Source of the DNA: Anthoceros angustus
Taxonomy: Eukaryota > Plantae > Anthocerotophyta
DNA: 64,000 nucleotides
NCBI GenBank assembly: GCA_010909165.1
Contig: MU008176.1
Coordinates: 736,856-800,855, forward strand
Reading direction: 5' to 3'
Shown here: positions 9,501 through 14,245 of the stretch, piece by piece
How positions within the stretch are numbered: the stretch's first letter is position 1
How the letters are laid out: each line of letters begins with the position of its first letter
Translations under genes and position numbers: made by a program
Notes under the pieces: generated by a model
Seen by the model: the letters and a program-made list of their open reading frames with translations, nothing else
What the model was told of the DNA's origin: nothing
The model's database searches: none

Positions 9501-12500
9501 ATGGTGGGTTTGTTTTCAGATTGCATGTGATAAGAAGATAATCAGCCCACCGGTACAGTTTATACTAACGCATGAAGGTTTTCTGTACATTAAATTTTTT
9601 GATATAGTTTATCGTATTTAGAACATGCTGTTTGTGTTACAGGCTAAAAGTCTTAGTCTAGTTCCGAATGTTGAACAAACTATCATTACATCCCTTTTAA
9701 CAACAACGGAAGAAGAAGGCTCTCATAACTGTACTTGTAAGACCGATATACCCCAGTTAACTTTACCTTCCTATGTTGTTTGATAGAAACCTCATTATTT
9801 GATGAATAGAATGAGATGAGATAGCTCTTTCGCCCTGGAAAAATTTAGGCAAAGACCATCAAGACCATTAAAGTTTTTGCAAAGTGATGATGCTTTTATA
9901 ATGATGATTTGGAAATGCTTCTGCTGTAGTGACATTACGAGATAGCAGATCCAATATTGTAGATCTTAAATCGGTTTATTTTTCAACTATGGCTACAAAA
10001 TATGACAATGGATCTCTTGTATGTGATTTTTAATGTATTTAATTTTTTTGAAGTTTCCTCTAATGGGTAACGTAGACTTTAAGTTTTTCCTAGCATTTCT
10101 TAGTAAAACACTTCAAGGTCCAAGATAAGTAGTTGATTCATGATAGAAATTTTGTTGAATTCTCTTATCCTTTCAAATTCATTATAATCTACTTGTTGTC
10201 GGTATTTGTTTCATTCATGTGTTTTAGGGCACTATTATTATAGGTGTAAGTCATGAAAACAAGACTCTCAGCGCTAATGTGGGATCTGGAGGAAGCTTGT
10301 GGGATCGTTTCAAGAGAATTTTTAATTTTGATTTTTTCAATTGTTCGTAAGTACCTATGCAGACATATTGAATCTAATTATGCAATACATATAGCAAATT
10401 TTTATGTTCTATTCTATGAATAGTAAACATTGCGTAGGTAATGATGATGGAACAATGTGTTACGTTCTCCATTTATGCTTTTCAAAAATTATGGCAGCGG
10501 TCACAACATTTATTACTATAATTCTAGGTAGAGTTTGAACATAATGTAAGCGCTAATGTCTTAGACTTTTTGGAAATTACTTATGGTGTTGATATGATAT
10601 TTCTTTGCATCCTACGTCTACAGGGATTGCTCTGGTGGTCGTTTTATGGCAATTTGGTTTGCTTGGAATTTTCACCCAGGTACTATTGTTACCTTGTAGA
10701 ACGTGTATATATATCATGAAAAAGAGGTGCAAGAGGATTGGGAACAAAAATAAGAAGGGAAAAAAGAAAGCAAAGAAAAAAAAGCGCAGGGGGAAAAAGA
10801 AAGGAATAGTGAAAGAGAAAAGAAAACGCAAGTTGCTGAAAATGATGAAATTCAAGACTTGGAAAAAAGGAAAGTTTTTTCCTAAAACAAATTTAGGAAA
10901 GAAGCTTGGTGAACTTTCACATAGCGCCCGCCTAGGCCCAATGAACTTGAGGAAAAAACTAGGTAACCTTACGAAAAATGCAAAGGTGGGGCCCTTAAAC
11001 TTTGGTAAAACGCTTGGTGCACTCACACAAAAAGCTAAGATGGGTCCCTTAAATTTGGGAAGAAAACTTGGTGATTTTACACAAAAGGTTAAGCTGGGGC
11101 CCATAAATTTGGGCAAAAAACTTGGAAATCTTACACAAAAGGCTAAGATGGGGCCCATAAATTTGGGGAAAAAAATTGGTGATCTTACACACAAAGCTAA
11201 GATGGGGCCCATAAATTTGGGGAAAAAAATTGGTGATCTTACACATAAGGCTAAGATGGGGCCCATAAATTTGGGAAAGAAACTTGGTGATCTCACACAT
11301 AAAGCTAAGACTGGCCTCCAATTTAACTCAGTACAAAATCTAGCAAGCAATCTCAAACAAGGATTTCATAACAGGGTGGCCCTCCCAATTGGTGTTCAAC
11401 AAGGAATAACACAGGGAACACAAGGTCTGCAAAATTTAAGGGGAATGTTGAATCCCAAAAATTTATTTGGAGATGTGTCCAAATTACCTACTACAAACAT
11501 ATTTGAAGGTACTAAGGCAAATCTATTAGGAGGTATAAAAAGCATGTTTCAAGAGGCTCCTTCTGTTCCATCCTCGATTGCACCCTTACCTTCATCTTTG
11601 GTTTTGAAGTCTCAACAATTATTAACTTCATCTCTAAGTCAACCTAAAACTTCACCTTTCACTCCTCCTGTTTCCTCCTTAACTATGTCTTTAGCTCCAA
11701 CTTTTGCTCTTCAAACACCAGAGTTATCACCACCACCTCCTCCACCACCCCAACCTCGACCCTTGCAATCCGTAACTTCACCTTTTACACCTACTCTGTC
11801 ATCCCATACTAAACCAATAGTTTCATCTTTGGCTCTCAATTCTACACAATTATTACAACCATCGCCACCCCCGCCTCCATCTCTGCGTCCACCCCCATCC
11901 GTAACTTCACCTTTTACAACTACTCTGTCATCTCATACTAAACCAATAGTTTCATCTTTGGCTCTCAATTCTACACAATTATTACAACCATCGCCACCCC
12001 CGCCTCCATCTCTACGTCCACCCCCGCCTCCATCTCTACGTCCACCCCCATCCGTAACTTCACCTATTACTCCTTCTTTCCCACCCTTGACTGCACCCTT
12101 AGTTCCATCTTTTGCTCTTCAGTCTCCACAATTAAGACCACCACCTCCACCCCCACTTCCATCAGGACGTCTGGGTGCACCCCAACTTCCACCTCCATCC
12201 CGTATTCGACCTCCATTAAATTTTCCCCCACCAAGGATAATATCACCTTTCACTCCTCCTTTTTTGCCCTTGCAGCCTATGCTCGCAGTTTCCTCTTTAG
12301 CCTTCAAGCCTCCACAAATATCAACACCGCCATCGCTGCCACCGCCACAATCACCACCACCACCGCCACTATCACCACCGCCACCGCCACCACCGCTGCC
12401 GCCACCGCCGCCCCCATGGCCACGGCCAATGTCAGCACTGCCACAATCTGCATTGCAGCCACCACTTCCAATATCAAGACCACCACCACAATCTCCTTTA

Positions 12501-14245
12501 ATTTCTTCCGGAATAATATATCGAACTGGAGCCACTTCAAATCCACTTCAACCAACTACATCATCATATTCTACGTCGACTCTTTTTTCTCCCTCTCGTC
12601 CTTTGGTCCCACTAACACCAACACCCGAAACCCAATCAGTAGTCCCACTTGCACCTGGACCCGCCCTCACATTAGCCATACCTTCAGTTGCTTCTTCGCC
12701 CCCAGCCCAACCACAACCACCCCTTCCCCCCAAGTCCGTTTCTGTTGCACCACCTCCGCCACCATTCCAGCCACAATTTATGCAACCATTTTCTTCTTCA
12801 ACACAACTTTTACCAACTTCAAATCCTATGACTCAAGCTCTTCCACAAGCTCAATGGAGACTACCAATTACAACTGTACATCTAAGCTCTAGGCCCTTCT
12901 CTTATTTAGAGCCTCCATCCATATCTCATATGAGAGTCCAACCAAATGCTCCTCTTTTTCCACATACTCACCCACAAGTTACACCTGGTTTCTTACCCAC
13001 CTCACAACCTCAAAATGCACGGCTGGAAAATAATGCTTTGAAACCACCAACGATGGTTCCCCAATTACAAGCTCAACGTATGAATGAACAATATGCATCA
13101 AGCTCTACAGGCAATGCGAGTACACAAGAGCAACAACCAATAGGGAATTACATGAGTTTGATACGACCATCACAACCAACACAATCATCTAGACGACTAT
13201 CTTCAAGTAATTTAAGTATTGCTCGTTCCAAAGTCCATGCACCAACATTTGGAACTCTTCCTGGTATGAGGCCATCGATGCATTTAGAACCAAGCTTGAG
13301 TATGCGACCATATACTTCTTATGATCAGTCACAGGTTACAAGCTCGCCACCAGTACTACCTATTACACCAGGTGCTGAATTCAATGTCATTAGGAGGGAA
13401 TTGCCTCAAGCTCTTTCAACTTTGAGTGTACGACCACAACTATCAGCATCTAGTCGGTCACACCCTTTAATTCATCCTCAAAGGTCCTCCACCCAAATCC
13501 AACCAATTACTAATCAAGCATTAATATCAAACATCCAACCACCACTTCCTACTAAGCCTCCACAAGTGGAACCTCGTGTACGTCAAACCATACAACTTGT
13601 ACAATCACTTCAACAAAGACAACAAATACCATATCCTAGTAGATTCTCACAGATCCCACCTCAAGTTTCTCCAAGTTTGGAGGTACCATATAGGCAGGAA
13701 CATATTCCTCCAAGTATGCAAATGACACATCCCACTATGCAGCTCACACAAGTACATGAACAACCTCAAGTTGTTCCAAGTGTAGAGTTATTACCTAGTG
13801 AAGGACAAACACTTCCCACTCCAAAAATTCAAGCGCAAACACATCCCTTCTCGGTGAGACAAGAAATAAATAATACTGAAACTTCTCAAGAAGCGTTTGG
13901 AGGTTTTAGTATGCAACTACAACATGGACAAACACTTCCAACCACGCAAGTAATGTATCAAGCTTTAACATCCTCAAGTGCAGTTTCAAGTTCTTATATA
14001 TATTTACTACCATTTACACAAGAGCAATCATAATCAAGTACTCTCCACCTCTAATTCTTCCATGTATGCAGGTACAATGGAGGCAACCACTTCCTAATAT
14101 GGAAGTTCCACAATTTACTACATTCGGTATGGAAACTCAACAATCCACTCAATTGCCTCCATTTGATATGCAAACTCAACAAGCCACTCAACAACCTCCA
14201 TTTGGTCGTGGTAGCCAACGACCTCCGTTTGGCCGTGGTAGTTAA
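6549..14245 (+). CDS. HAP2: HAP2/GCS1 class II gamete fusogen with very long cytoplasmic tail (18 exons, ~1749 aa)
   Basis: Hand-spliced GT-AG exons with consistent phases: 6549-6743, 6838-6981, 7075-7169, 7250-7304, 7407-7528, 7735-7813, 8143-8280, 8531-8701, 8789-8881, 8981-9081, 9202-9319, 9520-9552, 9643-9736, 9930-10018, 10228-10346, 10424-10527, 10624-13949, 14072-14245 (total 5250 nt). Recognised HAP2 motifs: signal peptide then C..C.NKIVV; KLSKSAV..YPLYY; IPYS.G.CC; CL.F...W; LQGDF; NKIGVGYQAF..Q..FC; TLEIAAD.I.Y; APG.I...F.A...G..VKNTG; LRDS..VD..F.T.AT..DNG; pre-TM Cys cluster; TM helix LWQFGL. The last intron (13950-14071) is the least certain. Confidence 0.9.
9373..9486. repeat. 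Compound microsatellite (TA)n followed by (GT)n in HAP2 intron 11
   Basis: Direct reading: about 33 TA units, a cc spacer, then about 22 GT units, ending ~30 nt upstream of the exon 12 acceptor. Confidence 0.97.
10880..11310 (+). repeat. 54-bp (18-aa) coding tandem repeat, about 7-8 copies, in the HAP2 tail
   Basis: Unit AKMGPINLGKKIGDLTHK. gctaagatgggg recurs at 11142 and 11196 (period 54). The 5' copies are more diverged. Confidence 0.95.
11769..12060 (+). repeat. 129-bp (43-aa) coding tandem duplication in the Pro-rich HAP2 tail
   Basis: SVTSPFT.TLSSHTKPIVSSLALNSTQLLQPSPPPPPSLRPPP occurs twice. tccgtaacttcacc is at 11769 and 11898, with an extra PPPSLRPPP mini-duplication after the second copy. 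Confidence 0.9.

Follow-up and report, generated by a model that had tools for sequence, protein, structure and literature searches.

A divergent HAP2/GCS1 gene of Anthoceros angustus with a predicted, modular cytoplasmic tail of about 1,143 residues

The 64,000-nucleotide (nt) stretch of Anthoceros angustus DNA analysed here, referred to below as the window (contig MU008176.1, positions 736,856 to 800,855), carries on its forward strand, at about 6549-14245, a gene that by its sequence is a HAP2/GCS1, and in which the transmembrane (TM) helix is followed by an unusually long open reading frame (ORF). On balance, and with slightly better than even confidence, we read this frame as a real, protein-coding and lineage-specific extension of a divergent HAP2: a mostly disordered tail of some 1,143 amino acids (aa), made of a proximal membrane module and a distal spacer or scaffold.

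The gene is assigned to HAP2 because the pieces upstream of the tail match the Pfam family PF10699 (HAP2-GCS1) in collinear order. The two strongest matches cover profile positions 248-303 at 8468-8707 (52.9 bits, E 3e-14; cut-off 27.4) and 361-406 at 9155-9331 (28.2 bits); weaker ones cover positions 25-73 at 6850-7000, 194-239 at 8116-8319 and 443-477 at 9908-10030, so that the pieces together span 25-477 of the profile. Searches by tblastn with distant HAP2 proteins hit the same places in the same order, and no break was seen in the succession of ectodomain pieces. The core exon at 8468-8707 also matches HAP2 ectodomain chains in the PDB (E 6e-06 to 1.5e-04), namely those of Arabidopsis, Chlamydomonas and Trypanosoma cruzi together with 7s0k_A, and is equally distant from all of them (25-30 bits). 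The last of these chains was deposited as a HAP2-GCS1 domain-containing protein and is presumably the Cyanidioschyzon HAP2. The layout read from the sequence is that of a type I membrane protein: a hydrophobic N-terminus (6549-6640), the ectodomain, a hydrophobic run across 10480-10691 and, directly after it, a polybasic block. A short intron links the Cys-rich stem exon, which ends at 10527, in frame with the tail exon beginning at 10624. Another intron of the gene contains a compound (TA)n(TG)n microsatellite (9361-9498).

The ectodomain is itself divergent, as judged from its sequence. When aligned to the Arabidopsis, Chlamydomonas and Cyanidioschyzon (7s0k_A) chains, the core HAP2-GCS1 motif proves to have two of its three Cys residues replaced: the Cys of C-[ND]-K-[IV]-G is here Ile and that of [SA]-C-L is Gly, the middle Cys being retained. 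If the two missing residues normally pair with one another, their replacement would amount to the coordinated loss of a single disulfide. Apart from these losses the motif, at 8534-8701, is kept. The Cys pattern is described as conserved in all GCS1s known in 2010 (PMC3013147). An exhaustive search of 1.84 billion proteins with the core ectodomain exon returned only 15 distant HAP2 matches and none that was close, the best being a fragment from JGI metagenome samples (45 bits, 50% identity). The gene is thus placed by sequence as a divergent member of the HAP2 family, and this copy may be a fast-evolving or re-purposed paralogue.

The tail frame, as taken from the ORF listing, extends on the forward strand from 10605 to 14033 and comprises 1142 codons with no internal stop. 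Over the same stretch the other frames contain 66 and 46 stops on the forward strand and 96, 31 and 69 on the reverse; in 2000 block shuffles the count averaged 55 and did not fall below 34. Nor is the openness confined to one compositionally favourable part, each of the sub-regions (TM plus basic block, repeats, linker, Pro modules, P/S/T-rich part, middle and C-terminal part) being free of in-frame stops. The fraction of dinucleotide shuffles that are likewise stop-free is at most 0.005 per sub-region, the exceptions being 12432-12800 (123 codons; 0.076) and the last exon (0.12). The composition of third codon positions in the tail (A.42, C.11, G.16, T.31) is the same as in the ectodomain exons at 8140-10018 and evenly A/T-rich throughout, unlike that of exon 1 or of the neighbouring PPR gene described below. 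Because all sub-regions are open and the codon composition matches that of the ectodomain, the frame has been maintained as coding sequence of the HAP2 gene, continuous with the TM exon, and is not a chance opening in Pro-rich DNA. Comparison of the tail, as DNA and as protein, with the rest of the window revealed no similarity, and it is therefore not a local repeat or transposon. The first-pass annotation, made from the letters and ORFs alone, had relied on such a long uninterrupted frame in AT-rich DNA to argue that the tail is translated. The openness of the frame and its continuity with the TM exon are borne out, as is the description of the DNA for the basic and repeat part (guanine plus cytosine (GC) content 0.36-0.40), but not for the Pro part, where GC reaches 0.50.

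That annotation had further drawn 10624-14245 as a single exon ending in two copies of PPFGRGS. The first 3.3 kb, up to 13949, are indeed continuously open and both copies are present, but they lie in another frame, reached only through a putative 122-nt intron at 13950-14071 that divides the stretch into two exons. The likely identity of this segment as a GT-AG intron is suggested by its borders and by its GC content (0.34), which is close to that of the preceding intron (0.33) and below those of the flanking exons (0.40 and 0.44). With the intron removed, about 1,143 aa are predicted to be cytoplasmic; were it retained, the frame would end at the stop at 14031-14033, and the length exceeds 1,100 aa either way. 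The sole forward-strand AATAAA within 10624-14245 is found at 13865, and two more follow the stop codon (Table 1). From about 14400 the GC content is back to around 0.5.

Searches and structure predictions for the tail were carried out exon by exon, while motif counts and lengths refer to the two joined tail-exon translations. The elements that the first-pass annotation had listed after the hydrophobic helix (the Cys-containing PCRTC...RC segment, a Lys/Arg block, 18-aa repeats, a Pro/Ser-rich stretch with long polyproline runs and a Q/P/S-rich end region) are all to be found in the translation. Three Cys residues lie no more than 13 residues from the end of the helix, and the first 100 residues hold 29 Lys and 7 Arg. 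A Cys-rich, polybasic cytosolic stretch after the TM helix is a common though not universal trait of HAP2 proteins, and the segment seen here conforms to that known architecture (PMC8777248; PMC2841615). Each of the Pro modules downstream starts with SP[FI]TP, has an SSLAL-like middle followed by Q, and closes with one to three polyproline runs. Altogether nine runs of 5-7 Pro occur at aa 376-720, the ninth (aa 716) within the P/S/T-rich part, and the polyproline run originally quoted is located at aa 584-605. Modules 2 and 3 represent a 129-nt duplication whose copies are 97% alike. Since the Pro runs use a mixture of CCA, CCT, CCC and CCG codons, they are not plain triplet microsatellites. 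AlphaFold2, run without an alignment, yields one confident helix from the TM segment through the basic block (predicted local distance difference test (pLDDT) score about 90), repeat helices of low confidence (51-66) and, for the final 385 aa encoded by the big exon, a mean score of 44 with a single short helix; as modelled, the tail would be almost wholly disordered.

Table 1. Features of the Anthoceros angustus HAP2 gene and its predicted tail (window positions; residues numbered in the tail frame)
Feature	Position	Strand	Frame residues	Basis or remark
Signal peptide, ectodomain and stem exons (many small exons, partial model)	6549-10527	+		PF10699, tblastn and PDB matches
Intron, 96 nt, GT..AG, phase 1	10528-10623	+		Read from sequence
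TM helix, continuing the hydrophobic run of the previous exon	10624-10691	+	up to 29	Translation; AlphaFold2
Juxtamembrane 3 Cys and Lys/Arg block, 67 aa	10692-10892	+	30-96	Net charge +33; isoelectric point 11.5; 51% K+R
Eight tandem 18-aa Lys-rich repeats, 54 nt each	10893-11324	+	97-240	Tandem Repeats Finder, period 54
Q/N/G/L-rich linker, 108 aa	11325-11648	+	241-348	0 stops against a shuffle mean of 5.3; low AlphaFold2 confidence
Five Pro modules	11649-12431	+	349-609	Eight of the nine runs of 5-7 Pro
P/S/T-rich low-complexity part	begins 12432	+	610-732	
Q/P/S-rich, predicted disordered region with last exon, about 440 aa	big exon up to donor, 13949	+	733 to end	
Putative last intron, 122 nt, CAA/GTAATG ... 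TGCAG/GT	13950-14071	+		Joins both frames in phase
Last exon, 57 codons, Q/P-rich, two PPFGRGS at end	14072-14245	+		Stop TAA at 14243-14245
Two AATAAA motifs just past the stop	14317-14353 (at 14317 and 14348)	+		

Constraint on the peptide was judged from the internal repeats of the tail. Comparison of the eight 18-aa copies shows variation at every one of the 18 third codon positions, but at only 10 of 18 first and 10 of 18 second positions. The ratio of the proportions of non-synonymous and synonymous differences (pN/pS) is 0.37-0.39, with 0.39 over all pairs, 0.34 for neighbours and a bootstrap interval of 0.24-0.55; in the two shifted sense frames it is 1.2-4.3. The peptides of copies 6 and 7 are identical although their DNA differs at two silent sites, and older copies differ at half of their silent sites with the peptide kept. 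This pattern of divergence shows selection on a peptide. A 259-aa ORF on the reverse strand at 10577-11356 was considered as a gene and is read instead as a mirror of the sense frame, with which it shares wobble positions.

How such a tail might work is suggested chiefly by analogy with HAP2 proteins elsewhere. The proximal 300 aa, combining Cys residues open to possible acylation, a polybasic helix of charge +33 and the eight Lys-rich repeats, would most likely act as HAP2 tails do in other species, holding the protein against the acidic inner leaflet and contributing to its placement or retention at the fusion site. The remaining 800 aa, in which the Pro modules are succeeded by a Q/P/S-rich chain, grew by tandem duplication, in part recently, and would serve as a flexible spacer or scaffold bearing candidate Pro-based docking motifs. 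The idea of a membrane-proximal module is, as an analogy, well founded: in many HAP2s the TM helix is followed by a polybasic stretch rich in Cys, and mutations in it affect localisation or function (PMC8777248), the Arabidopsis HAP2 tail requires positive charge (PMC2841615), and a statement in 10.1101/2021.09.03.458930, made there on the authority of Liu et al. 2015, credits a 237-residue tail segment with localising Chlamydomonas HAP2 to the mating structure.

Several observations weigh against a functional extension of this kind. The HAP2 C-terminus is dispensable in Plasmodium and its role is disputed in Arabidopsis (PMC3013147), and a copy that has lost two of three core Cys residues may be under relaxed or changed selection. 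The Pro modules give an equivocal pN/pS of 0.76, and for the 18-aa repeats the antisense frame that shares their wobble positions scores as low (0.33) as the sense frame; the coding strand is therefore fixed by context, namely the 3.3-kb frame continuous with the TM exon, and not by the repeat test. The hydrophobic moment of the repeat, about 0.4, is reached by 10-23% of shuffles and so does not stand out from them. Word searches of protein collections with the whole frame, aa 640-1142 and aa 30-330 found no relative of the tail, and no PDB chain or ESM Atlas cluster matched any part of it. The exact neighbouring PPR protein of this very genome is likewise not found in the protein collections, so the lineage is probably poorly covered and the lack of tail relatives may partly reflect that coverage. 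Finally, a search for sequencing runs found no RNA run that carries the stretch, and the single run examined gave no contig on 8900-14800; this is no proof of silence, since the gene is expected to be expressed only in sperm.

A bolder function for the tail had been put forward in the first-pass annotation, that of a fusion-site organiser in which FH1-like polyproline recruits profilin-actin or Pro-binding modules, the Q/P/S-rich end condenses, and the fusogen is thereby coupled to force or clustering. We consider this unlikely, a profilin/actin or condensate function being suggested here by the resemblance of motifs. The spaced modules with their runs of 5-7 Pro, a 24-aa stretch containing 19 Pro and five PPLP motifs would suit such a role, the use of several different Pro codons argues that Pro is preserved as a residue of the protein, and the disordered end carries FG/RG motifs. 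A precedent also exists in reovirus p14, a fusogen whose tail drives actin assembly via Grb2 and N-WASP (PMC7244324). As in an FH1 region, multiple polyproline tracks are set in a predicted disordered linker, but an adjacent FH2 or other actin-assembly domain was found neither in Pfam nor in the PDB; indeed the 1142-aa frame has no Pfam family at E<=1, WH2 included. Motifs of EVH1 or SH3 type are few (one LPPPP; 4 + 2 loose SH3 patterns), constraint on the Pro modules is not evident from their pN/pS, part of the array arose by a very recent duplication, and disordered Pro-rich chains are widespread, most of them having no link to actin. The more specific version, in which the tail of a HAP2-derived fusogen is itself a platform for actin assembly or clustering, with the Lys repeats on the inner leaflet and the FH1-like modules feeding profilin-actin, strikes us as slightly more doubtful. 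If true, it would unite membrane merger and a pushing force in one polypeptide, in a plant with swimming sperm, an arrangement for which a viral FAST protein, working via adaptors, is so far the only known case.

The divergence of the ectodomain raises the question of whether the gene is a redundant, decaying or silent paralogue, with a canonical HAP2 elsewhere in the genome and the tail an uninterrupted but neutral by-product of slippage and tandem duplication. The replacement of two Cys residues in a pattern described as invariant (PMC3013147), the remoteness of even the best match to the core exon, the recent duplications in the tail and the failure to find an RNA run carrying the stretch would all fit. 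We nevertheless hold it to be improbable: 3.3 kb lacking a stop or frameshift in each sub-region would be hard to keep without selection, the older repeats are half diverged at silent sites yet retain their peptide, the ectodomain pieces are all in order, and most RNA runs would be expected to lack a gene used only in sperm. Were the paralogue silent or drifting, it would instead illustrate the speed with which low-complexity tails lengthen on reproductive proteins.

Lower still we place the proposal that the main mRNA is short-tailed, through internal splicing or early polyadenylation, and that the long frame serves a minor isoform or belongs to a formerly separate downstream Pro-rich gene. 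A donor-like site does occur directly after the TM helix (10680, CAG/GTACTA), and the 122 nt before 14072 already point to splicing in the region. Sequence that was always spliced out or left untranslated would, however, gather stops, and there are none in any sub-region; codon usage does not change between the ectodomain and the end of the tail, the single forward-strand AATAAA in the exon lies near its end, and the tail resembles nothing else in the window. An extensin or hydroxyproline-rich glycoprotein (SPPPP) was rejected, since Ser-Pro(5-7) motifs placed after the TM helix and basic block would be cytoplasmic by the positive-inside rule and HAP2 topology, Tyr makes up 1.1% of the residues and there is no YXY motif.

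The body of the HAP2 gene, about 7100-14400, stands out as an AT-rich island, with a GC of 0.30-0.37 except in the Pro part and with AT-rich third positions, amid DNA of about 50% GC, exon 1 (6549-6743) being still GC-rich with third positions at about 0.73; low GC may mark sperm-specific genes in this genome. In Marchantia, DUO1 does not control HAP2 (PMC6290024), which speaks against looking for DUO1 motifs in the promoter. A second AT-rich stretch (52000-56000, GC 0.39-0.42) contains many AATAAA motifs and an ORF at 54253-55017 that has no Pfam match. The upstream neighbour of HAP2, on the reverse strand at 1885-4761, is an intron-less gene for a 958-aa PLS-class PPR protein with an E motif, whose Pfam matches (PPR_2, 331 bits; E_motif, 41 bits) point to a land plant with organellar RNA editing factors. 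Downstream, again on the reverse strand, an exon at 20104-21114 with a match to the N-terminal domain of Exportin-T (E 8e-33) offers a usable synteny anchor, and an ORF at 36620-37909 has a reverse-transcriptase domain (RVT_1, E 9e-31) and is probably part of a retroelement; further long ORFs beside it, at 37963-40828, have no Pfam matches. Two tandem intron-less F-box genes of 460 and 458 aa occupy 57155-58537 and 59089-60465 on the forward strand. An Rfam scan of the whole window gave no match.

HAP2 tails are reported to range from almost none to at least 500 residues (PMC8777248), and those of eight full-length HAP2 matches come, by a crude hydropathy estimate, to about 70-235 aa. The tail described here is about twice the longest reported for the family, length alone being a matter of degree. 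What the cytoplasmic domain of HAP2 does is unsettled, the domain being required in some species and dispensable in others (PMC8777248, PMC2841615, PMC3013147). A tail twice the size of the ectodomain and composed of separable modules would provide a natural dissection kit for the function of fusogen tails, and would allow a direct test of whether a gamete fusogen is wired to the cytoskeleton.

The nearest parallels are the HAP2 proteins of Chlamydomonas reinhardtii and Toxoplasma, class II gamete fusogens with tails of at least 500 residues in which a Cys-rich polybasic stretch is followed by a low-complexity remainder (PMC8777248). The Anthoceros tail differs in being about twice as long and in its eight 18-aa Lys-rich repeats and five polyproline modules; the likeness is one of architecture, the PDB holding only ectodomains and the tail searches giving no match. 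In the angiosperms Arabidopsis and rice, HAP2/GCS1 also has a positive region after the TM helix, in which charge matters over sequence and the sequence drifts (PMC2841615), but the angiosperm tail is short and His-rich, whereas here a Lys/Arg block with a charge of +33 in 67 aa is followed by more than 1,000 residues.

Outside the family, formin FH1 regions share the several polyproline tracks, short flexible linkers and disordered chain, while the Anthoceros tail lacks an FH2 or actin-binding domain, has runs limited to 5-7 Pro and possesses linkers with a conserved SP[FI]TP/SSLAL-like motif. The endodomain of the reovirus p14 FAST protein and the cytoplasmic domain of EFF-1 are fusogen tails that hold a polybasic motif, as the Anthoceros tail does, and recruit cytoskeletal machinery, that of p14 triggering actin assembly by N-WASP and Arp2/3 (PMC7244324). 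The viral protein is unrelated in sequence, its ectodomain is tiny, and its action depends on a phosphotyrosine-Grb2 adaptor rather than polyproline. Chlamydomonas MAR1, a partner of HAP2, is a membrane protein of the gamete fusion site with Pro-rich segments and a 608-residue, largely low-complexity (collagen-like) cytoplasmic domain (10.1101/2021.09.03.458930); it belongs to a different family and its PPSPX Pro-rich part is extracellular.

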